Origin: Bugula neritina
Lineage: Eukaryota > Animalia > Bryozoa
Assembly: GCA_964035545.1 (NCBI GenBank)
Contig: OZ037773.1
Span: forward strand, 1,703,751-1,767,750
Direction: 5' to 3'
Length of the DNA: 64,000 nucleotides
The translations under genes were made by a program, and so were the position numbers. The notes under the pieces were generated by a model. That model was not told the origin of the DNA. It saw only the letters and a program-made list of their open reading frames with translations, and made no database searches. Below, one piece after another: positions 27,757 through 53,760 of the stretch. Every line of letters starts with the position of its first letter. The first letter of the stretch is position 1.

Positions 27757-30700
27757 CGTTAGTCGATGTTGTTATTGAACCAAAGGAGTTAGCGCCGCCC
27801 AGGATCATGGGAAAAAGCATAGGGAACAAAAAAGAGGAAGAAAACCTATAGAAGGAAAAGATGATAAATACGACCGATGGAAAAGGCCTAGCTGAGCATG
27901 ATAAGGTACCACAAGCACACCGATGGACACGAGAGCCAACAAGAATATTGAGCGGACGGGATTATATTAGAATTATTCACCTAAGATATAAAACACTAGT
28001 AACCAACTCGCTAAGGAATAGAATTGGCCCATCTCAAAATATTTAGTACACACAGAAAAAAATTATCAAAAAATAAAATTTGTAGTAGAAAGCTCAAACT
28101 TTGTGATAAGGGTAATTATTAGGTGCTGAATTCAAATATGAAATTATTTTTTGCTATAGGTGCTTAAACTTGACCTTTAACCTCTCAAAAGTCCGCAGTC
28201 CAAAAAAATGGTGAAATATAAATGTTTATATTTTAATAAGCAAAACATGGTTTTAGACTAATATAAGGGCTCTGAATTTAAAAATAATACTAGTTTTTAT
28301 CTGTGATAGACACATTTATACCTTTGGCTTTATAAAGTCAACACCCAAAAAAAATTTATTAAAAATATTGCAGCATAAAGACAAAAGTTTTATGATTGGT
28401 TTTAAACAGAATGACTTTATTTTGGAAAATAATTTTCTACAGACTAAACTTTTAAAATTGACAGCATATGCATACAGCAGGTGCCTTTCCAAACCACTTA
28501 TGAGGTAGGCTAATAGCTTGTTACTTTTTTGTATAAATTGACAGTTCACCAGTAGTCCTATTATATGGAGTACAAGACATTCACACAAACAAAATGCATG
28601 CACAAAACATAAAATATTGTCAACAAACCATGAAATACATATTCACTAACACACTTCCTTCTACCTTATCTACACTCACATCTCCTCCTACAAAAAACAG
28701 TAAGACAAATTATAGAATGTTTGCTAATGTTGATGTTCACATTTAAACTTTCATCATTATTTCACAAGTAGCAGTTGCAGAAACCATGTGAGCTTGAGCT
28801 GATGTTATTGCAGCCCTCTCAATATTTTGCTAGTTGTAGGAGTAGATTGTTTAGTCTACATTTCTATTGTACTGGCTTCATCGTAAGATTTATCTAAACT
28901 TAATTAAGCTGTATATTTCAAGTATGATTTTTATTTTAATCGCTCTTCTGAACTTTCAATTTGTCTATACTTGTTCAGATGTTGACATACCCCTCAGTTG
29001 TTGCTTCCTTCTCTCTTGCTGCTCTTCAGACCACTGCTTTTTTCTGATGAAGCATGGCTCCTAGCAGTGGACTGTTGCCTGGTCTTGAAAGGCATGGAAC
29101 TATTCTATACAATATAAAAACTAAAATATATGAGTTTTTTAGTTTGGTAAGCTATTGAGACTAATGCTTAGAAGAATGAGGGTTAGCTATAATCTAAGTT
29201 ATTGGCTATTAATAACTTAATGCATATGATGATGAAACTAAATAGTTGCAAAACAAGAGCTAGCCTTCAGAATAAAGTTGTATTTAAATTGACTATTAGT
29301 GTTACAAGCTATTACACTATTGACAAGTTGTTAGCAATGATTAATTTGCTTAAGTACCCGTAGCGTACATGTCCGTAGTATAACTTACTCATTCAACTTA
29401 AACCTAAGGAGCTAATCCAAATCACTATTATGTACTAAGTAGATATATTAACATATTAATTTTATTGCAACTTATTCTTAAATTTCTAATTAAATTAAAT
29501 TTATCAAGTGCAAACTATAAAAAATGCCAATAAGCAGGGATCAAGCACTCAGAGTGAGAGTAGTAAGAGTAAGAGTAATCACTTAATGCTTATGTTATTA
29601 AGAAAAGTAATACTAATAGTATTAGTATTGGTAATATCATATTGAGTTCAATATCATTACACTTACAGTTTGAATTTACACATTGCAGTTTACAATATTC
29701 AGTATTGACTATTGAATTCAAAATGAATCATTAAATGGTGAATGGCTACTACAATTTCAATTTGAATTTTAAGTTGCTGATCGCGACAATAAAAGTTTTA
29801 GTTGAATATAAATTATGGCAATTCAAAACTAAAGTCTAAATACGCAAGTGCAATTTAAACTTAATGCATTAAAAAGTTATTTACTTAGTTATTTAGTTCT
29901 TATTTCCCCATTATCATTTATTTTAAATTATTAATATTAATAATAGAAATGTTATGATAAACTTAAAGAGTTACTCGTTATCGTTATGATTGGGATTATC
30001 ATTGTAAGAATTGATAAAACAAAAGAATAAAGCCTTAGAGAAAAATTGACTGAAAGTTATATTGTTTGATAAATATAAAAAGTTATGAGAAGTTTGGAAA
30101 AATACAATTAATACTAACCTGACGAAATAAATGAAAACTAAACCGCTATGCCATCAGATTATTTTCTTGGCAACAAACCGGATGCGCTACTATACTCTAA
30201 ATTCTAGAAGTTTTAAGATGACTTTATTTATGAAAACAAAATTAGATTACTGTGTAATTATTTTATACTTATGAATAAACAAAATAAAAATATATTTTTT
30301 CTTGTAAAAAATGAGTTTGAGCAAAATAATAAAATTTAACTACTTTATTTGAGAGTGTAAACAGAAAGCGTTAGCAATTTCGTTCTCGCGTGCTCATACT
30401 CAATTTACGGACAATTGTTGCGGACAAAAAATTCGTGAGGTTGAAACACTAAAACAGGAATATCTAAACTTGTACTGCTAGGAATTAGACATTCAGCACA
30501 CCAAGAGATTGACAAGCTTTTTTAGAACAGTTTAAGGAAAAAATTATAATCATAATATATATTTATAAAAAAGTTATGCTATGTCAAAGTTGAAATGTGT
30601 TACCCACTGAATTTATTTTTCAGTGGGTAAAATTTATAAACTTGTCATTTTTTCAATAAAAAATGCAAAATATAGCTTAAATATACTAATTTTATAATAA

Positions 30701-30970
30701 ATTAAAATGTTTTTTATTCTGGGACACAGTGAGTTCACATATTTGAAGCATCAGAGAGCTAGACAACATCATTTTTGAAAACCTGTCCTTATTTTGCACT
30801 GTACTAATTATTTTGAGATGAGCCAATAAATAAAGGTGTTTCGGCTTTTTGCCCAGTATGTATCAACACCCCACACACACTCAGTCACATATTACAAACA
30901 TGCCCACAATCACACGGACCACGTGTACACAGGCACAACACCATAGTAGAATATTTATGTAACAATAGAC
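27757..30970 (+). mobile_element. R2-like non-LTR retrotransposon 3' fragment, split by a DNA element
   Basis: 27757-28024 and 30826-30970 are colinear with 42583-42990 (HRWTREPT..HLRYKTLVTNSLRNRI / NKGVSAFCPVCINTPHTLSHILQTC). Confidence 0.88.
28025..30825. mobile_element. 2.8-kb non-autonomous TIR DNA transposon with 2-bp AT target-site duplication
   Basis: TIRs TGGCCCATCTCAAAATATTTAGTACA and TGTACTAATTATTTTGAGATGAGCCA. Removing the element plus one AT restores the R2 codons AGA ATA AAT AAA. Confidence 0.88.
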
Positions 30971-31949
30971 ATCTTTCGTCAAAGCCAACAGATGTAACTA
31001 GGCACTACGGACTCCTGTATTCAAGGGCTGATGGTAATGATGAACTAAGGAAAAATTACTGCCAGTAAACTGGAACTCACCAGGCCAATAGCATTGAGGA
31101 TCTATGGAATGATCACCCATACAAAATTCATCCAGATGTGACAATCTGTAAGGTTGCAATGGGTACCAGCTATCTGCAGGGTCAGCCACTGTGACTACAG
31201 AACTGCTGGGCTCGTCCACGTCAATCCTTGCCAGCCCAGCGCACTTTTGTAGTTGAGAGGGGTGTGTTGGCAACTGACAAAACCCGATTCATTCTAAAAT
31301 TAACTTGTCAGCAAATTCAAATGACCAATGAAAATAAAATAAAAAAGAAACTCATACTAGCTGGACGTCACCCAGGATAAAAAGTTCCAAAACAAAATTA
31401 AACTGAAATTTGCATCATGAACCATCAAAACTATGCCGGATCAGCATAATGCAGACAGATCCGGGCGACAAAGTAGAGCTTGCAAAGTACGACATCGACA
31501 TGGCTGCCTTCAGGGGTGCAAGACTTACTTAACAGACATCCGCAAAGTCAACAAATATAGTTGTAGGAAGCCTCAGGGCAGCTTATCTAGAAGGAGACTG
31601 AGTACCTCTATATTCTTGCACCAAGTGCTGTACCTCTACGTGGTGAGAATCGGTAACACTAACACTGGGACACTTTCCCAGCAGCTAATGGAGGACAGAC
31701 GACTGACAGACAGAATAACCCGAATCTCTTGTATGCTCTCCGGTGTATCATATCCGGTTTGTGACAACTCTGTCTCACTCCATCAAGCAAAGTTCTACTC
31801 TATCATGGCTACACACTCTAGAAGCAGTGCATCATTCACATATAACGATTCAGATGGAGTGAACTGAGCGAACTGGCTTTGCAAGTAGGAACTAGCACAG
31901 TTCAAGCAAGCATTTTAAGATTCCGTGCCTATAGGGTGCGACGCATGTA

Positions 31950-32863
31950 ATCAATTTACATGTACCATCTGTCGCCGATCATTCACCAAAAGGGCAGTCC
32001 TTCCATTACACCTAAGAAAGGCACACAGTGCTCAATACCATGCTACCATACCTATAGTGAGAAAGCAGAGATAGAACTACAAGACTTTATCGGAGGTAGC
32101 AAGATGGGAAGCAAAATTTGAAGGTGCCAGAAACATCAACCAGAAAATTCCAGCAAAGCTGCAATGTATACAATCGAGCAGATCAAAGGAGTTCGTAACA
32201 AGAATCCACAATACCGAGGGATATTAGATACCATCTGGAATGAACCAAACGCAGAAAGTACTACACCAATGGACGAACCAACCACCCAAACAGATGCCAC
32301 CAATGCTGTAGGCCATCAAGCAGCGCTTAAATCTGACTTAAAAAACTTCTAAAATACATTGATTTCGATATGTTATGTACTAAGTTGCCACTTGCAGCGG
32401 ATCCCAAGACACTAATAAGCTGTCAGAGTTTCATAAACAGAGTATTCAAGTCACTCTTTTCTAGCAAAGTACTGAAATTAAAATGAGTGAAGGTCATCCA
32501 CCCAAAGAAGGCGATACTAACAGGTCGGAGAAAGTGCAGATTAGCCTGAAGTCAGATCCTAAGATCGTGACTAACCAGATCATTGCAAGCAGCTATGCAC
32601 AAGATGAAGTGTCAATACCACCATCAGTCAAAGCCTACTGGTGGAATTTATTCCTAACTAGTTTGGCGCCCGACAACAGACAGCTAAAAGCTCAATACAT
32701 CCACAATGAGCTACTTCAACCTATTACACCTGCTGAAATAACCAATATCTTGAACAAAAAGTCAAAAGGATCACCAGGAACAGACGGTTACACCTGGAGG
32801 GACCTAAAGAAGGTTAACATGACTCTCTTAAGGTTGTGTCTCTACCTTTGGCTGATAGGCTAA
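31950..32863 (+). mobile_element. R2-like element N-terminal fragment (C2H2 zinc finger, Myb domain, start of RT), pseudogenised
   Basis: FTCTICRRSF..LHLRKAH; EVARWEAKFEGARNINQKI..YTIEQIKGVR; LLQPITPAEI..SPGTDGYTWRDL; contains stops and frameshifts. Confidence 0.8.
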
Positions 32864-32867
32864 TAAG

Positions 32868-33495
32868 CTGGTCAGGTCAGGTTGATCGCCAACCTGCTAC
32901 TGGTAACCATGTAATCCAGTACTACCTGTTGCATGGGCCGGGCGGTCGGGGACTAAACCGACAACTCCTCTTTTAGAGGGACCTGGAGGAACTAGAAACA
33001 ACATCCACCAGGAAACATCTCGGGCCCATGGAATCCCGTAAGCAATACCATCAGCTGGTAAGGGCGGATGAGTCTCCTACAGACCAACGGTTGTCCATTG
33101 CCATTGGATCAGGGTAAGACAAGCCAAGCCAGTGGCTCTCTGCAGTGCATCATGAGAACCACTTCAATCCACGCACAGCATTCTGCCTGCTAACACTTAC
33201 AAAGCCCTATGACGATTAGAAGGTGGCGACGGGGACAGGGCAGTGAGGCCTGGAAGTCCTCAGCTCCCAGCTAGCACATAGACGGTAAAAGCTTATCAGT
33301 CACTCATCTCTTGGATTGGACAGGAAAAATGTTCGGTAGTGGCTTTCACGACTGAGCAGCACCTCAATCCGAGGAAAGGACTAGAAAATGTGTCCCAGAC
33401 ATGTAGAATTCAAAGAGGTCATCAAGCTACTCACAAACAGCTGTAGGCAGACATCATACTCTACTTACAGGGATAGCAAAGAGATAGAGAGAAGT
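32868..33495. mobile_element. GC-rich non-coding insertion, possibly a non-autonomous element derived from RTE-type LINE UTRs
   Basis: Abrupt GC-rich block that truncates the R2 ORF and ends in a GAGATAGAGAGA-type tail; family resemblance is from memory only. Confidence 0.3.
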
Positions 33496-33893
33496 TGAAG
33501 AGTTCATCTTTAATGGATTTGTCTTCTCATGTATTTTAGTTACTAGTTACAGTTATTTTTTTACAATTATAAAATTCATATTAAATAGTATTTGTGTTGA
33601 CTTTGATTTTTTACAATTTATATTTGTTATTTTTGTTGAGAGTCTAGCTGCGCAAAAGCTAACTGCGCACGTGGGAATTAGTTAGGAGTTAGACATTTTG
33701 GAGAGTTATTGCGAGTTAGTTTAGCGTGGTCGTGTTGTCTATTATCTAATAAAATAGTCATAAAACCTATCCAAGTAAGTTCTGTTTTATATAATAACAG
33801 GCAATAGTAAAGAGACTTCGATAATTAACAGTACAATCCAACTGCAGTAATATTCAGTCTACTAGGAGGTTGTCTAATTATAATTGTTCATCA

Positions 33894-34771
33894 CTTTTAT
33901 AATTGGTCTAAGGTTGACAATAGTTTACATTGCTAATCCCAGCGTAACTATTGGTTGCAAGCAATTAATTATTCATTAATTCTCGCTGTTGCCTGGTTTA
34001 TAACTGCTTATCCCATTCATAGCCAGTTTTATACTGTACACTGCAGTAAGCAGAGGCAGGTTGTGGCAGCAAGAGAATAATCTTTTCTTGTTGTCTTCAG
34101 TTGATACTGAATTTGACAGGTTATCTCTGTTAAAACAGTAGTCATACACTTATCGTAATAACCCCCACAAGTAGTTGTGTAGAGGCATCGTTGGGTCACT
34201 CGCCTTACAGTAAAAATCCTCTAGACTGGTGGCAGCGGTAGAATCAGTTATGGAAGATAAGACTGAAAATAATCGTCCCTTAAATAGCTGAATAAGTAGG
34301 ATTGTTGTTGGTTAAATTCAGGTGAATAAGATGACCGCCCACAACATTGCTGTGTGTTTCACTCCCAACTTCTATCGCTCTAAACCCAACTGCAAGCAGA
34401 TCCAGTTGCAGACAGAGACTGTAGAGATCTGTATCACCAACGTCTTCAACATAGGTCACCAAAAAAATCGAGAAGAAACATCACATGGTATAATTCTCTA
34501 TTCCACAGCTGCAGTGCACTACCCTCAATTAAAACGCTCTGTATAATATTATACATAGCGATAAGCTCTACTTATCTCGCCCAGCTTGGTATATTATTAG
34601 TAAAAAAACAGATCATCATTATAAAATTGAGTGAAGAATATTATTTAACTTTGAAACCCAGAATGAAATAGTGTACTTTGAAAAAAATTAAGAGCTTAAC
34701 TTTTAGGGCAAGTGAGTAGGGGAGAGTGGGGAAGACGGACCAGTGGGTAATATGAACCACCGCTTGATTGA
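33894..34771 (+). repeat. ~875-bp segmental duplication, copy 1
   Basis: Near-identical to 40687-41562 (offset ~6791). Contains a PBS-like motif, a RhoGAP-like exon and the left end of a pogo-like element. Confidence 0.95.
34322..34487 (+). pseudogene. Orphan RhoGAP-like exon (second copy 41113-41278)
   Basis: TTCAG acceptor and G|GTATAA donor; VNKMTAHNIAVCFTPNF matches the C-terminal RhoGAP motif NKMxxxNLAxxFxPxL. Confidence 0.65.
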
Positions 34772-34812
34772 TAAAAAATCTCCCGAGCATCCACATCTCC
34801 CGAGCCATCAAG

Positions 34813-35112
34813 AAATTTGATGGCTCGGGAGATGTGGAGTTGTATCTCCAGCACTTTCAGGAGATTAAAGAGGCTAATGGATGAACAGATGCAGGAGCTC
34901 TGTTACACCTCAAGTGTGCTCCGGAAGGGGCAGTAACCGATTGTGGCAGAGGAAGTACGCTTGAGTTAATCTGCCAGGCCCTGCAAAGCCGGTTTGGCAT
35001 GAGCACTAGGTGTGCTCGTGAAAAGTTACACCAACTGAGATATGAACCGAATAGTTCTCTCCTTGTCCTTGGCTCATAAGTAGAGCGACTAGTCTCAATT
35101 GGGTACCCAGAC
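34813..35112 (+). mobile_element. Gypsy-type gag fragment
   Basis: KFDGSGDVELYLQHFQEIKEANG*..LLHLK..ALQSRFG..AREKLHQLR..VERLVSIGYP, with in-frame stops. Confidence 0.7.
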
Positions 35113-35283
35113 ACTGGGCATCATTTTGAGCAAGGCGCAAGGTATCATTGCTGTTCAGGGCATTTTATCTAATCAAGATTATATTTTTAATATAATAACA
35201 CAATGTGAGGATGTTTTGTCTAACATAATAGGTTACAATTCAGAATTTAATTATGACGCAAATATTGTGGAACTTAGTGATAT

Positions 35284-35555
35284 TGTAATGGGGCGTGGTT
35301 TACACGTCACGCGCACCCCCTGCCAATCACAGAGTTATAGATAACAATCGTATTAAGCCATACAGACAGTTAGTAGTTAGTTGGAGCGTAATTACAGTGA
35401 TGTAAAGTAGCAAGTTCCGTGATACATAGAGATATTTTTTGCATTGTATTATATAATTTAATAAAGCTTCTAATCGAAACTACCCTTGAGTTATCGGTGA
35501 TTAAATGCTAATTAGACTCGCTTGAAAGCCCACATAACTCTTGTATCGCACAACA
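35284..35555 (+). mobile_element. Solo LTR (272 bp) with 4-bp ATAT TSD
   Basis: TGTAA...CAACA termini, internal AATAAA at 35460, ATAT on both sides; absent from the paralogous empty site at ~37107. Confidence 0.85.
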
Positions 35556-35674
35556 ATATTATAATCGCGCTAAATACTATTGTAGTCAGTATACCTAAAA
35601 GCCCTTCGTTACCCAAGGCTAGGAACTCAGTGAATCGTAGCAGTAATATTGCTGCTGTACCTAGCCCAAAAGAT

Positions 35675-36740
35675 GGACACTAATAGCCTCATTACACCCG
35701 CTGACAAAACAAACAACTTTTACAACATGAAAATTATCAACTACAGAAAGCTACTGCACAACATCACTAAGGATTGCGAAAAACTGATCAAAACACACAC
35801 CAAGAAAAAAAACTGTGAAACTAAACATATTGGGAAGTCTCTGCAAATCGAAGACAAAATTAGAACCATTAATACAACTGAGGCATACATAAAACTGACG
35901 GACCATAAGCTTTATTTTATGAACAACTCTTGAGTGCAGACTAATAAATTCAAGTAAAACAGAAATGAGTATTATCAGCAAAAAAATAGACCAGATAAAT
36001 AAGGCTGCAATTCCAAAACTAGCTTTAAATAAAAATTTTTTGGACAAATAATTCTGAGGTAATTAAATGGTTTACAAGTTTAGGTAGCAACAAACGTTTA
36101 TCTTTTGTTGTATTTGACATTGTCGACTTTTCTCTTTTTATCTCTAATGAATTACTCCACACTGCAATTGAATTTGCTGCAGGACATACAACCATAACAG
36201 TTACAGCCCCCACTGTGATTTTCTATGCAAGGAAAATGTTATTATACCAATCTGGCCAACCTTGGAGTAAAAAGTGCGTCCATTATTTGACACCACAATG
36301 GGCAGCTATGATGGTGCACTCTAATTGGCATATTTTTACTTCATAAAGTTAACCAGAAATTAGGAAATACCCTTGGTTTGTATCGTGATGACGCCTAGGA
36401 GTAACAGACACACTGGAAAATATAGATGGGATTAAAAAATCGATGTGCAAAAAAATTTCAAAAACGCAGTTTAAAGATAACCATTGCAGCAAACAAGTCA
36501 ACTACCCAGATATAAATTTTGACGTCAGTAAAATAATACACAAACCCGATGTAAAACACAACAGCAAGATTTCTTATGTAAACTCTAAATCTAATAATCC
36601 ACTCCATATCACAAAAAACATTCCACAAGCCATAAACAACTGAATTTCCAACCTCTTGTCTAGCGAAAAGTTTTAATCAATCAACAAAGATACATCAAGA
36701 AACACTAACTGAAAGTTAAATGACCATGACATAAGATGCA
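35675..36740 (+). mobile_element. Penelope-like retroelement RT fragment (YRDDG type, Naiad/Nematis-like), decayed
   Basis: PADKTNNFY, FVVFDIVDF, FDTTMGSYDGA, GLYRDD, YVNSKSNNP; frameshifts. Region 35117-35870 is partly duplicated at 36945-37412. Confidence 0.8.
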
Positions 36741-37652
36741 ACACAGCTGTTTATTCAATTTATTAATTTTGTGAAGCGCATTATGAATATGACCAACTGG
36801 TGTCTTCTGATGATCAATGTGAGGAGTACCGTACAGTCTTTGGCTTGAAAAATGAGCAATAATTTACTACTGTAAATGACTTGTATGATACTTCTATCAA
36901 TCAGTATAAACAACAGCATGCTCAATGATGCATAAATCAGTTGCGCATCGTTTTGAGCATGGTGCAAGGTATCATTGCTGCGCAGGGCATCTTATCTAAT
37001 CAAGATTATGTTTTTAATATAATAACACCATGTGAGGATGTATGGTGTAACATGATAGCTTATAATTCAGGATCTAATTATGACGCAAATATTGCGGACC
37101 TTAGTGATATAACCAAGCTAAATACTTTTGTAGTCAGTATACCTAAAAGCCCTTCTTTACCCAAGAATAGGAACTCAGTGAATCGTAGCAGTAATAATGC
37201 TGCTGTACCTAGTCCAAAAGATTGACACCAATAGCCTTATTACACCAGCTGGCAAAACAAACAACTTTTACAACATGAAAATTACCAACTACAGAGAGCT
37301 ACTGCACAACATCACTAAGGATTACAAAAACTGATCTAAACACACACCAAGAAAAAATCTGTGAAGCTAATCATATTGGGAGGTCTCTGCAAATCGAAGA
37401 CAGAATTAAAACCAATGAACTCAATAATATCAACTGTAATGGGTACGAGTGTACTTTATAATGTAACCTCGTTGCCGATTGGCTTTGTGAGCCCGAGCAT
37501 GCTCTTTTGCTAGCGGGAGAAAATAGAGCCGGTCGTCCATCATTTCGATTGAGTGAATCTTACTTTTAAACTTTGTTTTTTGTCCTGCTTTATATCTGAA
37601 ACGACTATATTTCTATTTAATTGTGCTTTTTATCACCTCTACTTCGTTAAAC

Positions 37653-40686: not shown

Positions 40687-41562
40687 CTTTTATAATTAGT
40701 CTAAGGTTGACAATATTTTACACTGTTAATCCCAGTGTAATTATTGGTTGCAAGTAATCAATTATTCATTAATTGTTGCTGTTGCCTGGTTTATAACTGC
40801 TTATCCCAGTCAGCCAATTTCATATTGTAGACTGCAGTAAGCAAAAGCAGGTTGTGGCAGCAAGAGAATAATCTTTTCTTGTTGTCTTCAGTTGATACTG
40901 AATTTGACAGGTTATCTCTGTTAAAACAGTAGTCATACACTTATCGTAATAACCCCCACAGGTAGTTGTGTAGAGGCACCGTTGGGTCACTCGCCTTACA
41001 GTAAAAATCCTCTGCACTGGTGGCAGCGGTAGAATCAGTTATTGAAGATAAGACTGAAAATAATCGTCCCTTAAATAGCTGAATAAGTAGGATTGTTGTT
41101 GGTTAAATTCAGGTGAATAAGATGACCGCCCACAACATTGCTGTGTGTTTCACTCTCAACTTCTATCACTCTAAACCCAACTGCAAGCAGATCCAGTTGC
41201 AGACAGAGACTGTAGAGATCTGTATCACCAACGTCTTCAACATAGGTCACCAAAAAAATCGAGAAGAAACATCACATGGTATAATTCTCTATTCCACAGC
41301 TGCAGTGCACTACCCTCAATTAAAACGCTCTGTATAATATTATACATAGCGATAAGCTCTACTTATCTCGCCCAGCTTGGTATATTATTAGTAAAAAAAC
41401 AGATCATCATTATAAAATTGAGTGAAGAATATTATTTAACTTTGAAACCCAGAATGAAATAGTGTACTTTGAAAAAAATTAAGAGCTTAACTTTTAGGGC
41501 AAGTGAGTAGGGGAGAGTGGGGAAGACGGACCAGTGGGTAATATGAACCACCGCTTGATTGA
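40687..41562 (+). repeat. ~875-bp segmental duplication, copy 2
   Basis: Near-identical to 33894-34771. Confidence 0.95.
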
Positions 41563-44030
41563 GTGATTCTAGTTTTTTTCTTTATGTCATGTAACATTAC
41601 TGTTCCAGAGTATCACACGCTGCTTCTGCATATGCAATTCTGTTTCCACATACAAGGTGAGTAAATTATAATTATAGGCAAAAAATTTAAATATTTTGAA
41701 TCATAGTTAATCAGAAATATCTTTGCTGTATATCAACTCACAAGTTTAACATTTTCCACAACAGCAACTCAAAATGTGTTAAAGTAACCTGCATAAGCTT
41801 GAGAAGAAAACACTTAGGATTTGTGAAAAAACTTAAAATTTCTCCTTTGATAGCTCGAGGGGTAAAATTGACCCAAGTTCGAGCGGGTAATATGGAACAA
41901 TGGTTGATATTACCCCAACTTTAGGTATCCTATCTGTCAGGTTATTATATATTTTTGAGTCATTAAATGTAGAAATAAACATAATTTAAGACACCAACAA
42001 AGTATTATTTCATTTTGAAACCTGCATGTATTTACTCTGTTTTGAAGGTTTTAAAAAAGCCAAGAAATTCTCCTTGGCTGGCCTGAAAGCCAATCCAGCC
42101 AAGTGTGCTACGTTGAATATTAAGGTGTTATGCGGTAAGTGGGTGTGTGATGACAGACCATTCCTTGAGATAGCTGGCACAAAGGTGACTGCGCTGAGTG
42201 TCACTGACACTTACAAGTATCTTGGTGTGCAGGTAGGCTCAATGAATGTAGGGAGTAACCCCTCAAAGAGCTTGGAGACAGCAGTGAAGAAATTGACAAA
42301 AGCCCCACTTAAACCGCAGCAAAGGTTGTTTTTATTAAGGACCTTCGTAATTCCAAAATTCTACCATGCACTCGTTTTGTCACCTCCGACCGGAAAGGTG
42401 CTGACTCACCTTGACTACATTGTGAGATCAGAATGTAAAAAATGGCTAAAGGTACATATACATTTTGCTAGCGCAAATTTCTATGCACCAGTTAGCGCAG
42501 GAGGGTTAGGAATCCCATCGTTTAGGTATACGATTCGGAGGTTACGATTCGAAAGGGTTGCTAGGTTAACAGATTATGAGGATCCGCTAGTCGAGGCTGT
42601 CATCGATGCGAAAGAGCTAGCACCGCCCAGGATTTTGGGAAAAACCATAGGAAGTAAAAAAGAAGAGGAAAGCCTATGGAAAGCAAAGATGTTAGAAGCC
42701 ACCGATGGAAAGGGACTAGCAGAACACGAAGAAGTCCACAAGCGCATAGATGGACAAGAGAACCAACAAAGATATTAACAGGTAGAGACTTTATCAGAAT
42801 CAACCATCTTAGATACAAAACGCTAGTCACGAACTCGTTGAGGAACAGGATCAATAAAAGCGTTTCAGTGTACTGCCCGGTATGTGTTAATACCCCACAT
42901 ACGTTAAGCCACATGCTACAAACTTGCCCGAGATCTCATGGCCCACGGATACATAGACACAACAGCATAGTTGATTACATTTGTAAAAGGCTGGAAATGA
43001 AAGGGTATGGGGTGCTTTCGGAGCCGCATATCAGGGACGCGTCAGGGCTACTCAAGCCAGACATCGTGTACTGGCACGAAGCCTCGGAAGAGGTGAAAGT
43101 GCTGGACATAGCTATCGTCTCCGACCATGTGGCTCTGGAGGTACCCTATAATGGAAAAGTGGAAAAGTATAACGTCGAGAAAGTAAGGAAATACGCCAGA
43201 GATGTAAGCCAGAAAGAGATGGTGTCGATAGGAGGTTTCATAATAAACTGGAGAGGCGCAATATCGAAGCGAAGCGTGAAATTCTGTAAAGATTTCATTA
43301 GTACGAGAGAACTCCCAATATTGTCATTGAGGACAATGCAATATGGGGTTTACATATACGATATGTGGCACAAGTCGACGGTAATGTTGAATGAAATCGA
43401 GGAAGTGGACTCGTAGGACAGGTTGCATTGTCAAACATTTTTCTAGAATTTTTCAGTCATCATACCTGAAAGACAGGACGGAATATATCCCCTATTAATT
43501 AAATTTAACTTAACCCTTCAGCCATGGGAGACCACCAAATGGTTTAATGAACCTGTTGACTTACCTCGGATAGAGGAAAGACAGGCAAGTGAGAGATCCA
43601 AATTTACTGAAAATATTAAAACTGGACTAAGCCAACGTGAATCTGCTGCAAAATATAGGATTCTACGCACTACTTTTCTTAGGTATGCAGCTCGAAGTTG
43701 AGAGATAAAAAATCAGCACTAGGTCAGAAGGCAGCATTTACCGCAAAAGAGAAATCAAACCTGACAGAATATATCCTAGACTGTTATAAAACATTTTTAT
43801 GGGCTAGGCTTACAAAAAAACCAGAGAGCTAGCATATAGCTACGCAATCAATTTACAAAAAGAAACAATTCCTCAACCTTGGCGTGCGAAGAAAATGGTA
43901 GACAAAGATTGGCTAGAAAGCTCAATGGTGCGGTAAGTCTTCGAACCTTAGAAGCGACCAAACTAGGCAGAGCTTTCAACAGAATGACAATTTCAGAATC
44001 TTTCCATAACCTGGAACATGTCCTTAAGCC
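41507..44030 (+). mobile_element. pogo-like (HTH-psq/DDE_1) DNA transposon remnant interrupted by the R2-like insertion
   Basis: Terminal motif GTAGGGGAGAGTGGGG with GGGGTAA subterminal repeats; 43600-44030 reads GLSQRESAAKYRI.RTT, LTEYIL, DKDWL, EATKLGRAFNR..FHNLEHVL. Confidence 0.65.
42060..43416 (+). mobile_element. R2-like non-LTR retrotransposon, 3' half (RT C-terminus, CCHC knuckle, restriction-like endonuclease), one frameshift
   Basis: GLKANPAKC, YKYLGV, APLKPQQRLFLLR, GGLGIP, CPVC..TLSHMLQTC, RHNSIV, EPHI..LKPDIV..LDIAIV..KVEKY. A 1-bp deletion near 42737 relative to the paralog at ~27905 joins the two ORFs. Confidence 0.92.
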
Positions 44031-44049
44031 TTGACTGGGATGATCATAT

Positions 44050-44690
44050 CAATGCACCGCTGACTACGAGATGGAAAGATTGGATACAATAACTGAAGAA
44101 TATTCGTGTAGATCGATGTATAAAGACAATACGTTTTGGAGGTCAAACAAGCAAAACTGCATCACATCAGCGATGCTAGCGAAAATGAATATGGAGCATG
44201 CTCATATATCAAGCTTATTGATGTTAATGATAAGGGGCATCGCTCATGAATTTTGTCAAAGGCTAGAGTAGCGCCATTAGAGCCTTCTACTATACCAAGG
44301 ATGGAGCTTAAAGGCGCTGTCGTGGCTACTAAACTTAACGAGAAGAGAACTGAAGAGAGAACTGGATATTGAGATTGACGCAACTTACTTCTCGACAGAC
44401 AGCATCATCGTGCCAGGATATATCAAAAACGAAACTACTAAATTCCCACCATACGTGACAAACAGAGCAACTCAGATCAGAAAGTCGACAGAATCCCAAC
44501 AATGGAATCACGTATCTAATACTACAAATTCTGCTGACATGGCATCAAGAAGTATCACAGTTCACCAACTGGATATTTTAGATAGGTTACTGGCCCCGAG
44601 TTCTTATGAAAAACGAATCTGAGAGATGCGCTAGATCAGCAACCACAGAGTTTTGATATCTCGCAATGTTATCAGGAGTTGCACAATGTG
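44050..44690 (+). mobile_element. BEL/Pao LTR retrotransposon RNase H fragment
   Basis: KARVAPLEPSTIPRMELKGAV, TDSIIV.GYI, YVTNRATQIR..QWNHV..NSADMASR. Confidence 0.88.
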
Positions 44691-45679
44691 GTTAAATTGA
44701 GTTATCTGAAAGAAAAATATTATAAAAACAAATTTAAACATACATCTGCAGTTGCCAAGACAGTAGTAACAGTTGGTAATATACTGTAAGGCATATCTTT
44801 AATCGTTCAGTATTTATTTGTTCATGAATACAGACAGTAGACAATAACTTGAATTTTCAGTGATAACCACAAAATTAACTGTTCAACAGTGCTTGTGCAG
44901 ATAGGCTATAGAGATTTGGGCTACAATTATTAGAAGATTGATCGAGCCACACCCAGTTATGTGGTTACTTGCAACTGGCAGTTGGTATGAATTGGTTTTA
45001 TCCCTAGTCATAGTTATTTCAAAATGTATAGTTAAAATTTGATTTTTTAACTACCTTTCTACTAGATATTCTTTCAAATTTACTAGAAAAGACATTAGGT
45101 TTAACTTTAATAGATATTGGCATAGTAGTGCAGACTCAATCATTTGACATTGAGTTGGGTTATAACTTATATTCCATAACTAGGCAATAAATAGCAATTT
45201 CATCGGTGAAAACTGCTTATTGTCAACTTGATTGTATCTAATGCAAGTTAATTTTGAAGTTGTTGTGCCAATATACAAAAAGAAATAAAGGAAAAAAACT
45301 TCGGCCAAAGTTGCTTACTGTCATTATTATGAAAAGAAATTTACAAGTAACATAAAAGACAGCACCTTGGCGGCGAAAGGTGACCATAAAGACATTATAG
45401 AGAATTTCACAATGAAAATGAGCTGTGCAAGTGATGCTGTCAGCTGATGTATCAATCTCAAAAAGAGAGATAAGCTGGCAGGATTTCGACAACATTGCAT
45501 AATAGAGGTAATAAGCACCATGTTTCAACAGGCATTCCCGAAAGCATTTTCTACAGTTAGGTAATAGTTGCATATTGTTGTCATAATAAAATACCACGTT
45601 CCTACTTGAAAGAATTTTAGTTTCAATAAAATTAAAGGCTTTCCAGATCATTAGTAGTAAATCTACGCAAAACCAAAAT

Positions 45680-46500
45680 GCTTATTATCAGCAACAAAAT
45701 AGAAGACCTGATAAATAAGGCTGTAACTCCATAATTAGCTTTAAATAATAAATATTTGGACAATAACTTCTAAGGTAATTAAATGGTTTACAAGTTTAGG
45801 TAGCAACAAACGTTTATCTTTTGTTGTATTTGACATTGTCAAATTTTATCTTTCTATCTCTAATGAAATACTCCACACTGCACTTGAATTTGCTGCAGAA
45901 CATACAACCATAATAGTTACAGATTGCACTATAATTTTCCATGCCAGGAAAATGTTATACCAATATGGCCAACCTTGGAGCAAAAAGTGTGGCTCAGTAT
46001 TTGATATCACAATGGGCAGCTATGACAGTGCAGAATGTCGAACTCTAGTTGGCATATTTTTACTTCGTAAAGTCAACCAGAAGTTTGGAAATACCTTTGG
46101 TCTGTATCATGATGACGGCCTAAAAGTAACCGACACGCTGAAAAACATTGATGGAACTAAAAAATCGATGAAAATTTTTTTTTCAAAAACAATCTAAAAG
46201 TAACTATTGAAGTTAACAAGTCAACTACCTAGATATAAATTTTGACGTCAGTAAAACCATACAGAAACCTCATGTAAAACTTAACAGCAAAATTTCATAT
46301 GTAAACCCTACATTTAACCATCCACTCCATATCATAAGAAACATCCCACAAGCCATAAGCAACAAGCTTTCCCACCTTTCATCTAACGAAGAAGTTTTTA
46401 GTCAATCAACAAAGATACATCAAGAAGCAATAACTAAAAGTGAGTATACATATAGCTTAACATTTCAGCCAACACACATAACTAGTAGACCAAAAAGAGC
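45680..46500 (+). mobile_element. Second Penelope-like RT fragment
   Basis: Paralog of 35970-36720; FDITMGSYDSAEC..LVGIFLL..GLYHDDGL, VNYLDINFD. Confidence 0.85.
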
Positions 46501-46539
46501 GAAAAGCTGAGGAGAAGCCGAAAAAAGTTTACGGAAAGC

Positions 46540-47140
46540 CTGGAGCAATCTACTGCTTTTTGTGTCGAGCGATAAGGGATCATTCTGCTTCAGACTGCAA
46601 CCAGAACAGGTGTTATAACTGTGGCTAAAAGGGCCACTTTGCCAAAAGCTGCACCACCGACTACTGTTGATCCTGCAATGTGCAGGGTCACATAATGGAG
46701 ACATGTGTTGCCGGCGGCGCCCTCTATGCTGCCATAAGAAAGACCAGACGCCATGGGTTCTGACACTGCACTTTATTCAAAGGTAGTGACAAAAAGATCG
46801 AAGATTGATGAGGCTACACCACCACCCCCAGGAATGAACTTCCACGATACGATGTCGTTCTTCTTGAATGGCGTGACTAAACAGAAACTGATCGATCTGG
46901 AGGCATATGACTCCAAGTTCCAGGCAATTGCAGAAAAGAGAGCAGAGGTGGACTGACAAAAAGTCGCTTTGAAGCAAGAGCTTCGGGCAGCTGAGCTTGT
47001 GGAGCCAGCTATGGAGTACATGCAGAAGGCACTTCCGTTGGTTGAACAAAAATTTCTTGATAAAGGCACTTGTTCGACTCGACTCCATATTGCATGAATA
47101 AAACAAAGTCGATTTGCCCACACACTCAAGTGACATTATA
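46540..47140 (+). mobile_element. Retroelement ORF1/gag fragment with three CCHC zinc knuckles
   Basis: CFLC..RDHSASDC, CYNCG*KGHFAKSC, C*SCNVQGHIMETC at ~46555-46706. Confidence 0.65.
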
Positions 47141-47364
47141 TACACTGTTGTGAATTACAATAGTGATCTGAACTATTTAAGCAAAAATCAATCACTTAGA
47201 CCATGCTAGAAGGCAGTTCCGTTACTAACGATGTCACATGAATTAAGTTTTTTTGTTCAACACTAAAACCAGTTTATTGCCATACCTAGAGTTGGGCAGT
47301 CTAATTCTCTGATCTACTTAAAAATCGATCATAAATATGAATATTAGAATATAAGAATATAACT

Positions 47365-48030: not shown

Positions 48031-49339
48031 TCAAATTGAGGTTTTAGATATTTTTTGATTGCTGTTAATTTTTGTTGTGTTCTATTATTATGTTTTGATA
48101 AACTGAAGACTTAATTTTATCAACCTTACTCCCAAGGTTTTACAGGAGCTTTTTGGTCATAGCTCTTGGTAAAATATGTTTGATAAAAGAATTTTGTGAA
48201 AGGCTTTGGCACTAGCTTTTTGACTGTCAGCTTTTTTGCTGTGTTAGGAGTTACTGCAGCTCAGAAAGTGAATGAGGGAAGTTGGCTGCACTCATTTGCT
48301 CATTAGTTTGCCTTTTGCTAGAAGATGCAAATAACTTACACGCTATTGCCAAAATAGTTGTATTATTGTATTATGTTATTTGTTGTGTCTAACTAATTTT
48401 AGTGAAAGTTCTGTAAGCAATAACTCTATTGATGAGTGTGAATTTAACTAGAATCTTTGTACTTTTATAGGTTACAGTATTATATGAAAATATAGATTGT
48501 TGACAATAAGCAGTAAATTGCATTGTCATCCATGCCATTCAGCATCCATGCTGTCACACTCATTTGCGAAAGTTGAGTTGAGGGCCTTGCTGAGACGAAG
48601 ACAGTGTAGTAGGATATTTTGATGACTATGAAAGTGAAATCAGCGACTCTGATGGTAAACTTCCAACTTTAAAAGAAGGTAATGACATTGAATATGAAAT
48701 AATATCATATAACCAGTTGCTATCACAAAATGAGAAAACGTTGTTACTGGCATTCAACTTTTACCACAGTCATTGACCGAGAGTGTTACTATCTACAGAG
48801 TCACTGACTGTTAGTCCACTCGATCAATGCCTCCCGTTTTAGCTAGTGTTTGTAGAAGTAAAAGTGAGCTACGCTGTCCTTTCCAAAATGATTGTGTTCA
48901 TTATGATAATCATAATGATTTTGGTGGTGATGATCATGATTGAAATAGTAATGAGTTGACTAATTTTAAATGCAGCTGCTCAAAAATTGCATGTCCTTGT
49001 TTACCTTAACTGATTTGCTTGGCACGTATTTCGATTGCAAAGAGTAGACTGTGGAAGATTTAGATTTAGTTTTGAGAGCTGAATTACAAGCATTAATGAA
49101 TTGGGATTTTAATACTGTTGCTAAAAACAAAGGGCTTATAGCATCATGAAAAACCAGTGTGTAGACAACTTTTCCTTAAACTGCACGATATAGGTCATGA
49201 TAGGCTTGATAGTTTAGTAGCCCACCTCAAACAGGATGGCCTGTGAAAATGGCAAAGAAAACTCCGGTGTAAGAAAAAGTAATACAAGAAGTATCAATCT
49301 CAAATCTACCAAAAGTGTTGTTTGTTTTTCATAAAACTT

Positions 49340-51446
49340 CGCTGAAGAGTATGCCATCAAGCTCGCTGGACGAGTGCCTGGTTTTAAATCTTACAATATA
49401 TTTTTCCGACCATCAAAGATGACCAAGAGTTTTGTCTACAGTCAGTACATCACATGCGAATCAAGTGTCGGTCGTTGGCTCCACTATTTTTAGCAGCTTG
49501 TGGCACTCTACTACCATTTATCATTTTAAGCAGACCAGCTACTAATTTTTGTTGTTACTGTGTAGTAATTCGATCATCTTCTGTTCAGCGGACAAAATAA
49601 AAACAACTATATAATACATTATCCTCTATGGAGGTGCTTACAAAACGAACCAGCCAGAACATTGAACTAAACTTCATGATAGCTGACCACACTAAGTTTT
49701 TCCTTAATCAAACAATACCCTTATAAACAAGTGAATATATTTTAAATGAAAATATAGCAGTGCTCTATTTTATTTTCTAAAAACTACTTATTATATTAAC
49801 ATATTTCATTGTTGTGAAACTTGCTAACACTACTAACAACCTTGAAAGATAAAATTTTATGCTGCAATATAGGAGTAGCAACAAGGAGCTTATTAAAATA
49901 ACAGGGCGTGTTCGTTATAATATTATGATAATTACTTATATTGTAAGCTCCTCGCACTTGTATTTATATTAATACTGCGTTTTATATTATAAATCATTCA
50001 ATCTAATAAACTAGTAAATGATCTACATAATTATAAACGCATGCAAATTATTACCAATTACGACTATACAAATAGGTCATAACACAACAGATTAAGACAT
50101 TATGACAGTGTACACTGTACAGCAACAACTTGCACATTTACCACCATGCTTGCAAAGAAAAAGCCTGTTTGTCAGCTGTTGCGCACTTATCATTTGATTT
50201 TTGGCCAGCAAGTAAGACATGCTTTTCACTACTAATGTTCTTAACACTTTTCTCTCAAGCTTTCTGCCAACATTAATCTTTTAGTAACTATGACTACCAA
50301 ATGATAACTCTTATTTTATATAACTTAGTGTTTGACTATATTAAAAAAGCTAACTATCTAATTAATTGATATTTATTGATTTTATTGTTCTTTTTACAGT
50401 AATCAAAGTTACCGAAATTATTGATTGAATGTTACTTCAATTTTGGCCCTAACTACACTATCTATTCAATTGATTGCAGCCCGGTCTTATTTATTTTAAA
50501 ACACAGCGTAAATGTGCATTGTTTGGTGTCAGCAAGGAAGGTGATTATCAACAGCTGACCTATTTTATTGACGGAGAGCGACAAGTAAGGGAGCCAACAC
50601 CGTGATGCCATTTATTTACGATTACTCAAAGCGTCTTAATGTCAACCATGATGCACCTCTTTTGCTGCATGCAGATAACTGCTGGTATGTGTTTTAATTT
50701 TGATGTCATGTTTCCTAAATTATTTTTTCATTTTAAATATTTTCCTTTCCTTTTTCAAAATGTTACTGTGTAACAATCCAAGCATTTTCTGTTCAGTGGA
50801 CAGAATAAAAACAACTATATGATACATTACCTTCTATAGAAGTGCTTACAAAACGAACCAGCTAGAACATTGAATTAAATTTCATGATAGCTAGCCACAC
50901 TAAGTCTGCCCCTAATCAACATTTTGGCAATATCAAAAGGCACTTTGCAAAAGCTTTTGGTTCTTCCTTGGCAGAGTTAACTCAAGTTTGTCTCCCGCTA
51001 GTGATTTCTTATTCTGTTTTGTTCAGAAAAACAAATAAGTACTTTGTTTGCTATAATTCTTTGATACTTATTATTGGTTTTTGCAGGTTGTCAACAACTA
51101 TGCAGTAAAAACACTGCTTTGATAGTTGGAGATAGTACTGGAGATACTAGGGAAGTGGTCATGTATGACTAGGCTCAATTTCTTCCTCGATTTATCTGCC
51201 GTCTACAACACATACTCTTTTACCATCAGATAGCCCTCACTGCAGAAGTTGATAGGAGATTATGAGACAACTGAAGTTCTTAAAAAGTCTCTTGCTGCTG
51301 TAATTACATCGAAAGGTCCCGACTTTCAAAAGCAGTGGTATTTTTATGAGCAGATCAGGGAGATTTGTGAGTCAGATACTCAAGATCTCTTCTGCATTGG
51401 ACCATCTTTTCCTAAGCTTAAAGGTGAAGCTGTTGAGTCATATTAG
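49340..51446 (+). mobile_element. Sola-like DNA transposase remnant with introns
   Basis: LFGV..E, KGANTV, LLLHADNC|SGQNKNNY, FMIASHTK.APN..FG, KQWYFYEQIREIC; the GQNKN exon is duplicated at ~49580-49712. Confidence 0.65.
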
Positions 51447-52569
51447 ATTATATCTAAACTAAACCATACAAAAATAGAATCATGATACATTTTTCAACAG
51501 CATACAGATAATTATCAATGTTGGTAACAAATATAGCTGGGACATCCAATACTGAGTTTACAACTGTACCATCTGCTGCACCAGCAAGAAAACAGACCAA
51601 AAGGAAAAAATGGCAAAAACATTGTAATGATGGAGTGCAATATTGGAAGTTACAATATTTAATTAATTTTATTCACAATAATTAAAAATATAAGTTTTAA
51701 ATTGTTGGCGATTATTTGCATAACGCACACTGTATATTGTAGGTTTTCACACTCTGTTGTTCCTCAACCATGATGTGCTATTGTAGTGAATTTGTGTACA
51801 CGTCAGAACTCGGGTCCTAATAGCTGAGACCTGTGGAGGGCCCAACAATACAGAGTGCTCTTTCTGCAAACGGAGTTTCACTTCACACCGACGATTACGA
51901 ATCCATGCATAACAACACTCTGTCAACTATTTAGGTCAGGACCTAAAACACCGAAGGTCTCGTATTTAGACGGTACTGAAATGTAAGATTAACCTCTGCC
52001 TATTTGTACAGAGTAGCTAGGCATCTGCCGAGGCATGTGTAACTCTCTCTGCACCAACTTCTGAGATCAAGACATGAAATAAAGGAGGTCCCATGTGTAT
52101 GGGGAAAGAGGGATGCCAGCAGAAACTCTCCACACGGCGCAATTTAGAAACTGCTCAGAAATAACTTTTTTAGGGTAAATTCTTAGAAAATATTATTTGA
52201 ATGCTGTAAAGTTGTAATAATGCACTTGTTATTTTGATTAATGAAGCTCAAATGCTGCTTTTAAATTTTTATTTCATGCTGTTTTAAAAAGAGTTTATGT
52301 CTCAGCTTCAGCTAAATAAGAGTTCAGTAGCTACAACATCTTTTATGGGAATTGTCTGAAATTGAACAATAACCAATACTCTAATTATGGACAGTGTATA
52401 TAAAACTTGCAGTAGTTTGCTCAAAAGAAAAACATAAACCAGTTTATCCAACAGTTAGTGTCATTAGCTATTGTTTGATGTATTACAAGCATAAAAATCT
52501 TATTACATATATAAAAAACTAAATACGATAAATCAAGATGGCGACTGCTACATTTCCTGTATACAAGAA

Positions 52570-53760
52570 CTCAAAGAGTTGTTCTGCAAAACTGCTTTAG
52601 CGAAGAATTGTTGGTTACCTCTGGTGTACCCCAAGGATCAGTCATTGGCCCCAAACTCTTTTTATTGTATATTAACGACCTGCCTGATTGCCTCTCCTGT
52701 AAAGTTAGTTTATTTGCAGATGATACCATCATTTTTACATCTGTAAATAACTCAAATGACTCTGAAAGTTTTGAAAGAGACATAAACAACATATATGAAT
52801 GGTCTATAAAATGGGGCATGTGTTTCAATATTAAAAAGACCCAACTAATGATCTTCTCTAAAAGACCAAATTTTAATGGTACCTACACTTTCACAGGAGA
52901 AAAAGTTAGTGAGGTTGAAGAGGCCAAATATCTAGGCGTCATTATACAAAATAATCTAAAGTTTGCAAACATATAGAGCAAAAAGTTAAAAAGGCCTTTC
53001 AGATCCTGGGGTTGATAAGGCGAACACTATCAAACTCGCCGCGTAAAACAAAATTACTTGCTTTCACTTCCTTATGCCGCCCCATACTTGAGTATGAATG
53101 CCAGGTATTTGACCCTTATACACAAAAACTTGTAAATAAAATCGAGGGAGTTCAAAATCTGGCTATTCGATTTATAGGAAACTTAAAAGGCCGTACTGAC
53201 AGTGTGTCAGAGACCCGATAAAAATTAGGCCTCAGCACTCTGGAAGTCCGTCGTAGGGAGTCGAGAGTGAAGCTCTACAAGAAAATGGTGGGTAGCCCAA
53301 CAGAGATTTTCACTAAATTCTTGGAAGAAAACACCAATCTTGTTAATACTAATGTAACCACGTGTTTTCAGTCACAGAGATTGGTAACATCTCTCTTCAA
53401 ATCCTGGCCTATTTTATCATAGCTTCCTCCTTAGAACAATCAGGGACACTAGAATTGAAATCGGTGTGGAGCAGACTGCTCACTTTTGTTCCCATTGAGC
53501 GTCCCTACCATTGCTTTCTTTTAATAGACCTCTACATCAATACATTTTATTTTGCTTTATGCAGACTGCTCACTTTTGTTCCCATTGAGCGTCCCTACCA
53601 TTGCTTTCTTTTAATAGACCTCTATATGAATACATTTTATTTTGCTCTATACATTAAAAAAATTAGAAAAAAAATTGCCATTATAGTAACTCGTTGATCT
53701 CTGAGGCTTGCACGATGGTCCTACGGGATCCGCTGCAGGATCTACTTCATACAGATACAG
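52570..53760 (+). mobile_element. 5'-truncated CR1/L2-group LINE with 9-bp TSD
   Basis: SGVPQGSVIGPKLFLLYINDL, FADD, KYLGV, RPILEY; (GATACA)n tail; ATACAAGAA at 52561-52569 and 53761-53769; 90-bp tandem duplication in the 3' UTR (53471-53650). Confidence 0.92.

Follow-up and report, generated by a model that had tools for sequence, protein, structure and literature searches.

The 26.5-kb space between ALKBH1 and OPA3 in a 64,000-nt stretch of the Bugula neritina genome (the window) is filled with transposon remains that point in one direction: all 15 independent insertions that could be oriented, belonging to 13 families, read on the + strand, and no minus-strand insertions were found. Judging from the sequence, we tentatively read this block as a compact bryozoan uni-strand piRNA cluster of the flamenco type, which would diverge from a housekeeping-gene promoter and keep every transposable element (TE) class in antisense only; we give this reading a probability of about 0.4.

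The TE block extends from 27754 to 54278, rather than ending at 53760 as a previous sequence-only reading had proposed, and at least 85% of it is transposon debris. ALKBH1 lies on its left and ends before it, while OPA3, named by reading its N-terminal motif, lies on its right and starts after it, with the ATG at 55258. Both are complete + strand genes, and the block does not lie within an intron of any + strand gene. As previously claimed, no intact host gene lies between them: Pfam gave no convincing host domain there, and the weak matches are RhoGAP (1.6e-4 and 5.8e-3), located within a duplicated TE-associated segment, and two others at ~0.003-0.006. The sequence-only reading had also named an intron of a minus-strand host gene as a competing explanation; both neighbors are on the + strand, the block yielded no domain-bearing minus-strand ORF, and the Pfam scan of ORFs found no minus-strand coding exon or domain at the block edges or inside. 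No tRNA or Rfam genes were found in the block. The CpG observed/expected ratio is ~0.5 everywhere and is uninformative. The single public sequencing run that matches the stretch is DNA, with contigs continuous across OPA3 intron 1 and a flat depth of ~140, and no RNA run contained at least 1/20 of the words of the 49.5-55.5 kb segment.

Direct Pfam searches of the short window ORFs are insensitive (the 30.8-37.4 kb region gave only zf-C2H2 and a weak RhoGAP match), so the segments were oriented through better-preserved copies at other loci of the genome (L001-L024). Each repeated segment was matched to such copies, and its orientation was set by their Pfam-verified ORFs and by tblastn back to the window. 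The local duplicates at 40687-41562 and 36942-37414 were left out of the count of independent insertions. The features are listed in Table 1.

Table 1. Features of the ALKBH1-OPA3 interval, with positions in the window.
Feature	Position	Strand	Evidence or description
ALKBH1 upstream exon	24489-24836	+	phmmer vs solved ALKBH1 chains, E 3e-9
ALKBH1 last coding exon	25056-25571	+	phmmer vs solved ALKBH1 chains, E 8e-13
R2-like non-LTR fragment 'a'	27754-28024, 30825-30964	+	97-99% identical to L008
Young non-autonomous DNA transposon	28025-30824	unoriented	26-bp TIRs, 3-bp AAT target duplication
APE-type LINE, 5' region	30982-31529	+	78% identical to L018 4219-4738 (L018 minus strand)
Old R2-like/RLE-type non-LTR N-terminal region	31608-32857	+	zf-C2H2; 68-69% identical to L023, L024
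Second APE-LINE family, 5' region	32872-33492	+	84-85% identical to L020 3545-2956
Gypsy (L001 family)	33511-34261, 34807-35115	+	LTR; 510-bp insert; leader and gag N-terminus
Solo LTR, another Gypsy family	35284-35558	+	94-96% identical to both LTRs in L021, L022
Penelope-like fragment	35659-36716	+	80% identical to L011, L012
Tandemly duplicated junction	36942-37414	+	local duplicate of 35115-35868 (self-BLAST)
P-element/THAP9-like DNA transposon	37405-40689	+	TNP-like_RNaseH_C 8e-9, THAP9_C 0.006, on + ORFs
Local duplicate (97%) of 33894-34771	40686-41562	+	LTR 3' part and downstream segment (self-BLAST)
Pogo-like short element	41508-42072, 43609-44029	+	82-84% identical to L010
R2-like non-LTR fragment 'b'	42062-43586	+	84% identical to L007; 5'-truncated, 3' end present
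BEL/Pao pol remnant	44124-44369	+	Peptidase_A17 in two + ORFs, 4e-7
Second independent Penelope-like fragment	45654-46612	+	80-83% identical; tblastn to L011 ORF, aa 196-512
CCHC ORF fragment, Gypsy family	46497-47057	+	81% identical to L013
Dispersed ~390-bp repeat	48140-48532	unoriented	>40 copies, 66-83%, on both genome strands
Unclassified 5.7-kb element R_J	48597-54278	+	collinear with L014, L015 at 66-79%
MITE/SINE-like ~190-bp repeat	49914-50108	unoriented	nested in R_J; many copies, 79-85%
LINE 3' part, tandem-repeat tail	52554-53764	+	nested in R_J; RVT_1 4.7e-17
Two CCAAT boxes (putative promoter)	54915-54944		~320 bp upstream of OPA3 ATG (55258)

In the left part of the block, R2-like fragment 'a' matches the RVT_1 ORF of L007 by tblastn (aa 417-550), and the atlas clusters nearest to it bear the name type-2 retrotransposable element pol; a search for contigs encoding the R2-like ORF has no match on record. 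The fragment is split by the young DNA transposon, which is 99.9% identical to L006, has at least eight full copies at 97-100% and yielded no protein domain. Because it is a non-autonomous TIR transposon, this element has no orientation, in agreement with the sequence-only reading, which could not orient it either. The L018 match of the first APE-type LINE is followed directly downstream by an APE-like region in the same sense, and an assignment of 30982-31462 to the 3' part of a Gypsy element was rejected because tblastx showed an APE-LINE context. The parts of L023 and L024 that match the old R2-like region lie just upstream of RVT_1 ORFs, and zf-C2H2 is found on + ORFs of the window. The matching part of L020 likewise lies upstream of ORFs with Exo_endo_phos and RVT_1 that read in the same direction. 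The Gypsy remnant is 84-93% identical to L001, L002, and L003, which carry ORFs for PR-RT-RH-INT, with a gag tblastn identity of 91%, and the full Gypsy elements L021 and L022 have their pol ORFs on the strand that matches the solo LTR. The first Penelope-like fragment matches a 700-aa ORF by tblastn (aa 102-460), and its atlas neighbors contain HTH_animal, GIY-YIG, and RVT_1. A single template-switch chimera as the source of the left mosaic (27.7-35.1 kb) is unlikely, since its fragments diverge very differently from their nearest copies (68% to 99%).

In the right part, the P/THAP9-like transposon has many genomic copies at 85-93%. The pogo-like element is split by R2-like fragment 'b', and its L010 copy is unbroken across the insertion point and has an ORF with HTH_psq (9e-7). 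Fragment 'b' matches the L007 RVT_1 ORF by tblastn (aa 242-637). If the R2-like element targeted the pogo-like element site-specifically, the insertions would not be independent; this was rejected, as other copies have different 3' flanks. The BEL/Pao remnant, for which no DNA-level copies of its segment were found elsewhere in the genome, was placed by elimination and motif reading within the unique segment 44030-45654. The CCHC ORF of L013 carries zf-CCHC and follows RH-INT on the pol strand. R_J, which carries two nested insertions (Table 1), has a 377-aa ORF without a Pfam domain; atlas and homologue searches returned only uncharacterised proteins, with E values of 1e-34 to 1e-73 for the homologues. 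The nested LINE is 91-94% identical to L016, L017, and other copies, with a read depth of ~2-13x baseline.

The oriented families (R2-like, APE-LINEs, Penelope-like, Gypsy, BEL, P/THAP9-like, pogo-like, one unclassified, and a LINE 3' end) represent four TE classes that share the + orientation: non-LTR, Penelope-like, LTR, and DNA transposon. Three repeats have no assignable orientation (Table 1). When each family is counted only once, all 13 are on the + strand, and Pfam detected no TE domains on the minus strand among 118 ORFs of at least 40 aa. The near-total strand bias claimed by the sequence-only reading is even stronger than stated. Of its element labels, the following were also supported: R2-like (three pieces), Gypsy gag, Penelope-like, solo LTR, P/THAP, BEL (Peptidase_A17), pogo-like (HTH_psq), CCHC ORF, and a LINE with RVT_1. 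SINE-like repeats outside the block do occur on both strands by self-BLAST. The independence that it had assumed fails for the two pieces that self-BLAST shows to be local duplicates; the others were counted as independent.

A single shared orientation has a chance of 2^-12 (13 families) to 2^-14 (15 insertions) per block. With a loose correction for a genome of ~8,000 blocks of such size, ~0.05-0.2 chance blocks are expected genome-wide, the expectation being this low because only a minority of blocks have room for at least 13 orientable insertions. Elsewhere in the genome, neighboring TEs of different families are opposite in four pairs and the same in one (few loci, one mosaic excluded), suggesting that co-orientation is not obviously the genomic norm. 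The insertions also vary in age, with nearest-copy identities from 68-70% (old R2-like) to 97-99% (R2-like 'a'). A bias that holds across TE ages suggests a filter acting over a long time and not a single event, and the 99.9% identity of the TIR element to another copy indicates that the block still gains insertions.

We propose that the ALKBH1-OPA3 space may be a long-lived transposon trap that retains only insertions pointing along the + strand. The most likely cause would be that a single long non-coding Pol II transcript is made from the minus strand across the block; it would probably start divergently from the OPA3 promoter region (~54.3-55.0 kb) and run from the OPA3 side toward the ALKBH1 3' end. 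Insertions oriented like this transcript would bring terminators or splice sites and be lost, and antisense insertions would be tolerated or favored if the transcript is processed into antisense piRNAs. The usual TE bias relative to a host transcript is antisense, and because the TEs lie in the sense of both neighbors, a + strand transcript is disfavored and a minus-strand one is favored. A minus-strand piRNA precursor spanning the block, making it a small uni-strand piRNA cluster, is a candidate explanation at the same tentative strength as given above. The anatomy expected of a uni-strand cluster is all present: the block is saturated with TEs, contains no host gene, and has a complete one-strand orientation. 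The wide age range, the Piwi-domain genes, and the two CCAAT boxes lend circumstantial support. Piwi-domain matches occur at six or more genome loci, AGO and PIWI clades pooled, some of them in a tandem group on C2; PIWI1 and PIWI2 have been reported from bryozoans (PMC11114477). The CCAAT boxes that the sequence-only reading had placed at 54915 and 54940 are present in the sequence, and they may equally be explained as the OPA3 promoter alone. The minus strand of the block shows no depletion of AATAAA (36 observed versus 22 expected), which is neutral to mildly negative for a minus-strand precursor. The small size of the block, a bias that extends beyond Gypsy, and the undepleted AATAAA point against the piRNA reading.

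The block resembles the antisense TE bias of host-gene introns in its one-sided orientation over tens of kb. Intronic bias is attributed to the removal by selection of terminators and splice sites in sense orientation; here, in contrast, no gene spans the block and the TEs lie in the sense of the neighbors. It shares nested insertions, local duplications, and mixed classes and ages with ordinary TE graveyards or islands, which are expected to be mixed in orientation, whereas all 15 insertions here are co-oriented. In other animals, piRNA clusters that are uni-strand or have a bidirectional promoter usually also measure tens of kb, and, like them, the block is intergenic and sits next to a housekeeping-type promoter, here one with CCAAT boxes. 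Such clusters are delimited operationally, from the density of mapped small RNAs (e.g., proTRAC), and many of them have hardly any bias in TE orientation, whereas the block was recognized from its sequence. A further comparison is with Drosophila flamenco and the flamenco-like clusters, with which the block shares TE saturation, an absence of host genes, truncated and nested fragments, near-total one-strand orientation, flanking conserved single-copy genes, and a putative promoter at one end. Flamenco-like clusters are defined by having most TE fragments on one strand, opposite to cluster transcription, and by abundant piRNAs antisense to TEs from a single genomic strand (PMC10643416); this one-strand bias is a criterion for finding them (PMC10643416, PMC11400887), and FlaHMM predicts them from it (PMC11400887). 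In the block, 15 of 15 insertions lie on one strand, which would be the one opposite to transcription if the proposed minus-strand transcript exists. However, Drosophila flamenco-type loci measure 227-1085 kb and their bias is driven by Gypsy-family ERVs only (PMC10643416), whereas the bryozoan block is far below this size, has only three Gypsy fragments and one BEL among the 15, and is equally one-sided for its non-LTR, Penelope-like, and DNA elements.

The same orientation evidence would also fit a minus-strand transcription unit without piRNA output, in which ordinary selection against sense-oriented TEs gives the bias. Antisense TE bias within transcription units is well established, and such a unit could be either the large intron of an unannotated minus-strand gene or a long non-coding RNA transcribed divergently from OPA3. 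We consider this rather unlikely, given that the Pfam scan of ORFs revealed no coding exon or domain on the minus strand inside the block or at its edges, both neighbors are complete genes on the + strand, and AATAAA shows no depletion on the minus strand; divergent promoter transcripts are moreover short as a rule, which argues against an OPA3-divergent RNA of this kind. The shared orientation could also be luck in an otherwise ordinary nested TE graveyard, since the genome offers ~8,000 blocks against the per-block chance above, this one was singled out from many windows and only after its pattern was seen, and the two local duplicates show that independence can fail. Luck nevertheless appears quite unlikely, with chance blocks possible at roughly 0.05-0.2 genome-wide and a bias shared by four TE classes and by insertions of widely different ages.

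Orientation-dependent insertion, or selection unrelated to minus-strand transcription, seems improbable as the source of the bias. The A-rich sense strands of resident TEs could draw same-sense target-primed insertions, and the + strand of the block is indeed A-rich, with an AT skew of ~+0.1 over most of it. However, composition-guided priming is applicable only to APE-type LINEs (~3 of 15), and the seven integrase- or transposase-driven insertions show the same bias. Instability of inverted same-family copies could contribute, as the R2-like, Penelope-like, and Gypsy families are each present more than once, but the bias survives the collapse to one insertion per family. Constraints from the two + strand neighbors could be imagined as well; near-gene TE bias, however, disfavors sense-oriented TEs and thus acts against the orientation seen here, not for it.

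The block suits read-based testing because it is small, mostly unique enough for unambiguous mapping, and has two conserved genes at its edges, and the latter also permit synteny comparison among bryozoan species. Should there be no minus-strand transcript, a new explanation would be required for 15 insertions of several TE classes all pointing the same way. To our knowledge, orientation-selected uni-strand clusters have been documented in detail almost only in Drosophila. If the piRNA-cluster reading is true, orientation-selected TE traps are not Drosophila-specific; they would either be old or have arisen repeatedly among animals, and they could be located by strand bias alone in genomes without small-RNA data. 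A validated example from a lophotrochozoan would establish the trap architecture as general, support strand-bias scans for predicting piRNA loci purely from sequence, and provide a first handle on transposon control in Bryozoa.

The block between ALKBH1 and OPA3 (27754-54278) was annotated without a repeat library by searching its pieces against the animal's own genome (216 Mb, 321 contigs). The 28 loci with the best or most intact copies were aligned to the window at the DNA level, and their long open reading frames (ORFs) were scanned with Pfam and then placed on the window by tblastn. Each repeat is oriented by its verified coding strand elsewhere; the method is blind to strand within the window. 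At least 85% of the block is assignable to repeats, and all 15 elements that could be oriented by homology lie on the + strand, with no minus-strand element found in 27754-54278. The near-total strand bias proposed in the sequence-only reading is therefore borne out and strengthened. As a symmetric control, all stop-to-stop ORFs of at least 40 aa on both strands of the block were scanned with Pfam. The + ORFs match RVT_1, TNP-like_RNaseH_C, THAP9_C, Peptidase_A17 and zf-C2H2, and none of the 118 minus-strand ORFs carries a transposon domain. A protein encoded in the block has a hypothetical protein of Bugula neritina among its homologues.

Repeat elements of the block, with window coordinates and orientation
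Element	Position	Strand	Remark
1: R2-like non-LTR 'a'	27754-28024 + 30825-30964	+	97-99% identical to another copy
2: APE-LINE 5' region	30982-31529	+	APE domain follows in homologue
3: old R2-like N-terminal region with zinc fingers	31608-32857	+	
4: 5' region, second APE-LINE family	32872-33492	+	
5: Gypsy LTR, leader, gag start	33511-35115	+	
6: solo LTR, different Gypsy family	35284-35558	+	
7: Penelope-like fragment	35659-36716	+	atlas neighbours with HTH_animal, GIY-YIG, RVT_1
8: P/THAP9-like element	37405-40689	+	
9: pogo-like short element	41508-42072 + 43609-44029	+	HTH_psq in intact relative
10: R2-like 'b'	42062-43586	+	nested in pogo-like element
11: BEL/Pao pol remnant	44124-44369	+	
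12: second Penelope-like fragment	45654-46612	+	
13: CCHC ORF fragment, third Gypsy family	46497-47057	+	
14: R_J, unclassified, 5.7 kb	48597-54278	+	377-aa ORF with real homologues
15: LINE 3' part with RVT_1	52554-53764	+	nested in R_J
2.8-kb non-autonomous TIR transposon	28025-30824	no orientation	26-bp TIRs, 3-bp duplication; nested in R2-like 'a'
Dispersed ~390-bp repeat	48140-48532	no orientation	
MITE-like ~190-bp repeat	49914-50108	no orientation	

In self-comparison, 33894-34771 recurs as a 97% duplicate at 40687-41562, and 35115-35868 is duplicated at 36942-37414. These two local duplicates were left out of the count; the other 15 stand as insertions. Four insertions are demonstrably separate events, since relatives of the elements that they interrupt are continuous at the split: R2-like 'a' contains the TIR transposon, the pogo-like element contains R2-like 'b', and R_J contains both the MITE and the LINE. 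Across the insertions, the closest copy in the genome is between 68-70% and 97-99.9% identical, indicating that the pile accumulated over a long time.

The TIR transposon is non-coding with an AAT target duplication, and at least eight full-length copies exist at 97-100% identity, the one at locus L006 being 99.9% identical. Judged from its copies, the family has been mobile very recently, and the 3-bp duplication suggests that it is PIF/Harbinger-like. The 510-bp segment following the Gypsy LTR (34262-34771 and 41055-41562, a 97% duplicate pair) is not present in the LTR family's other copies and weakly matches the RhoGAP C-terminus (E values of 1.6e-4 and 5.8e-3); this could be a piece captured from a host gene, or a spurious match. 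Elsewhere in the genome (L001, L002, L003, L021 and L022), the Gypsy families of the block have LTR pairs of 96-99.6% identity and long open pol frames, indicating recent activity. Penelope-like copies occur in head-to-head inverted pairs and short tandem arrays (L012, G000:C3:3316000-3321000; G000:C9:2729171-2737166), an arrangement typical of this class.

On one side of the block, ALKBH1 is recognised by two + strand exons, 24489-24836 (E value of 3e-9 against solved ALKBH1 chains) and 25056-25571 (8e-13), and its coding sequence stops at 25571. The gene on the other side, which we take to be OPA3 from an N-terminal motif read by eye, has its ATG at 55258 on the + strand and additional exons near 57.7 and 58.7 kb. 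As both genes are on the + strand, the block is a tandem (+,+) intergenic interval. A tandem repeat array at 27160-27485, past the ALKBH1 3' end and ahead of the block, yields repetitive + ORFs. A short repeat in OPA3 intron 1 (55950-56300) shows ~50-fold read depth versus the single-copy baseline in the single sequencing run containing the stretch, a DNA run. An inverted relative lies at 24102-24400 in ALKBH1. The repeat is SINE-like and present in high copy number, and outside the block it occurs on both strands.

Transcription is the usual cause of one-sided orientation of transposable elements (TEs): insertions sense to a transcript are eliminated for the terminators and splice sites that they bring. 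The TEs of the block are sense to both neighbours, the reverse of what a + transcript (read-through from ALKBH1, or an OPA3 exon further upstream) would lead one to expect. The observed bias instead fits a minus-strand transcript across the block, to which the + TEs would be antisense. In PIWI animals, the uni-strand piRNA precursor is the best known such transcript over pure TE debris, and the candidate transcript could be one. A minus-strand piRNA precursor is our leading reading, with a probability of about 0.4 from the sequence evidence; some other minus-strand transcription unit over the block is unlikely. The genome contains four Piwi-domain loci in tandem within ~43 kb (G000:C2:12874319-12917145), a local expansion of Argonaute/PIWI-family genes, and further Piwi-domain loci on C4, C2 (7.08 Mb) and C216. 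PIWI1 and PIWI2 have been reported in bryozoans (PMC11114477), and strand bias is the criterion for locating Drosophila flamenco-like loci (PMC10643416, PMC11400887). The CCAAT boxes noted in the sequence-only reading are present at 54915 and 54940, ~320 bp ahead of the OPA3 start codon. A bidirectional promoter would fit these boxes, though OPA3 by itself accounts for them. AATAAA hexamers show no depletion on the minus strand of the block (36 observed versus 22 ± 5 expected), a neutral to mildly unfavourable result for the piRNA reading.

Chance, which we consider slightly less likely than another minus-strand transcription unit, would give all 15 insertions a shared orientation with a probability of 2^-14 per block, or 2^-12 if the 13 that remain with one insertion per family are counted. 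The genome could be divided into ~8,000 such blocks without overlap, only a minority of them able to hold that many orientable insertions, and we estimate that 0.05-0.2 such blocks would arise by chance genome-wide. In the few loci fetched, neighbouring fragments of different families point in opposite directions four times and in a shared direction once. At L009 (G000:C8:5176500-5185000), Gypsy, P-like, R2-like and pogo-like fragments are co-oriented within ~5 kb; this mosaic could belong to a further block with strand bias, although it is partly a 4-kb tandem duplication of an R2-like 3' end next to a piece of a Gypsy ORF. Some other orientation-dependent process is quite improbable. Were R2-like 'b' site-specific for the pogo-like element, the orientations of the two would be linked, but other copies of R2-like 'b' have unrelated 3' flanks, which rules this out.

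Also against the piRNA reading, the block differs from Drosophila flamenco-type loci in being an order of magnitude smaller and in a bias that is not Gypsy-specific, whereas Gypsy-specific bias is a defining trait of those loci (PMC10643416). Owing to these two differences, the block should not be filed as a member of the flamenco family; by analogy, it may at most work like a flamenco-type locus.
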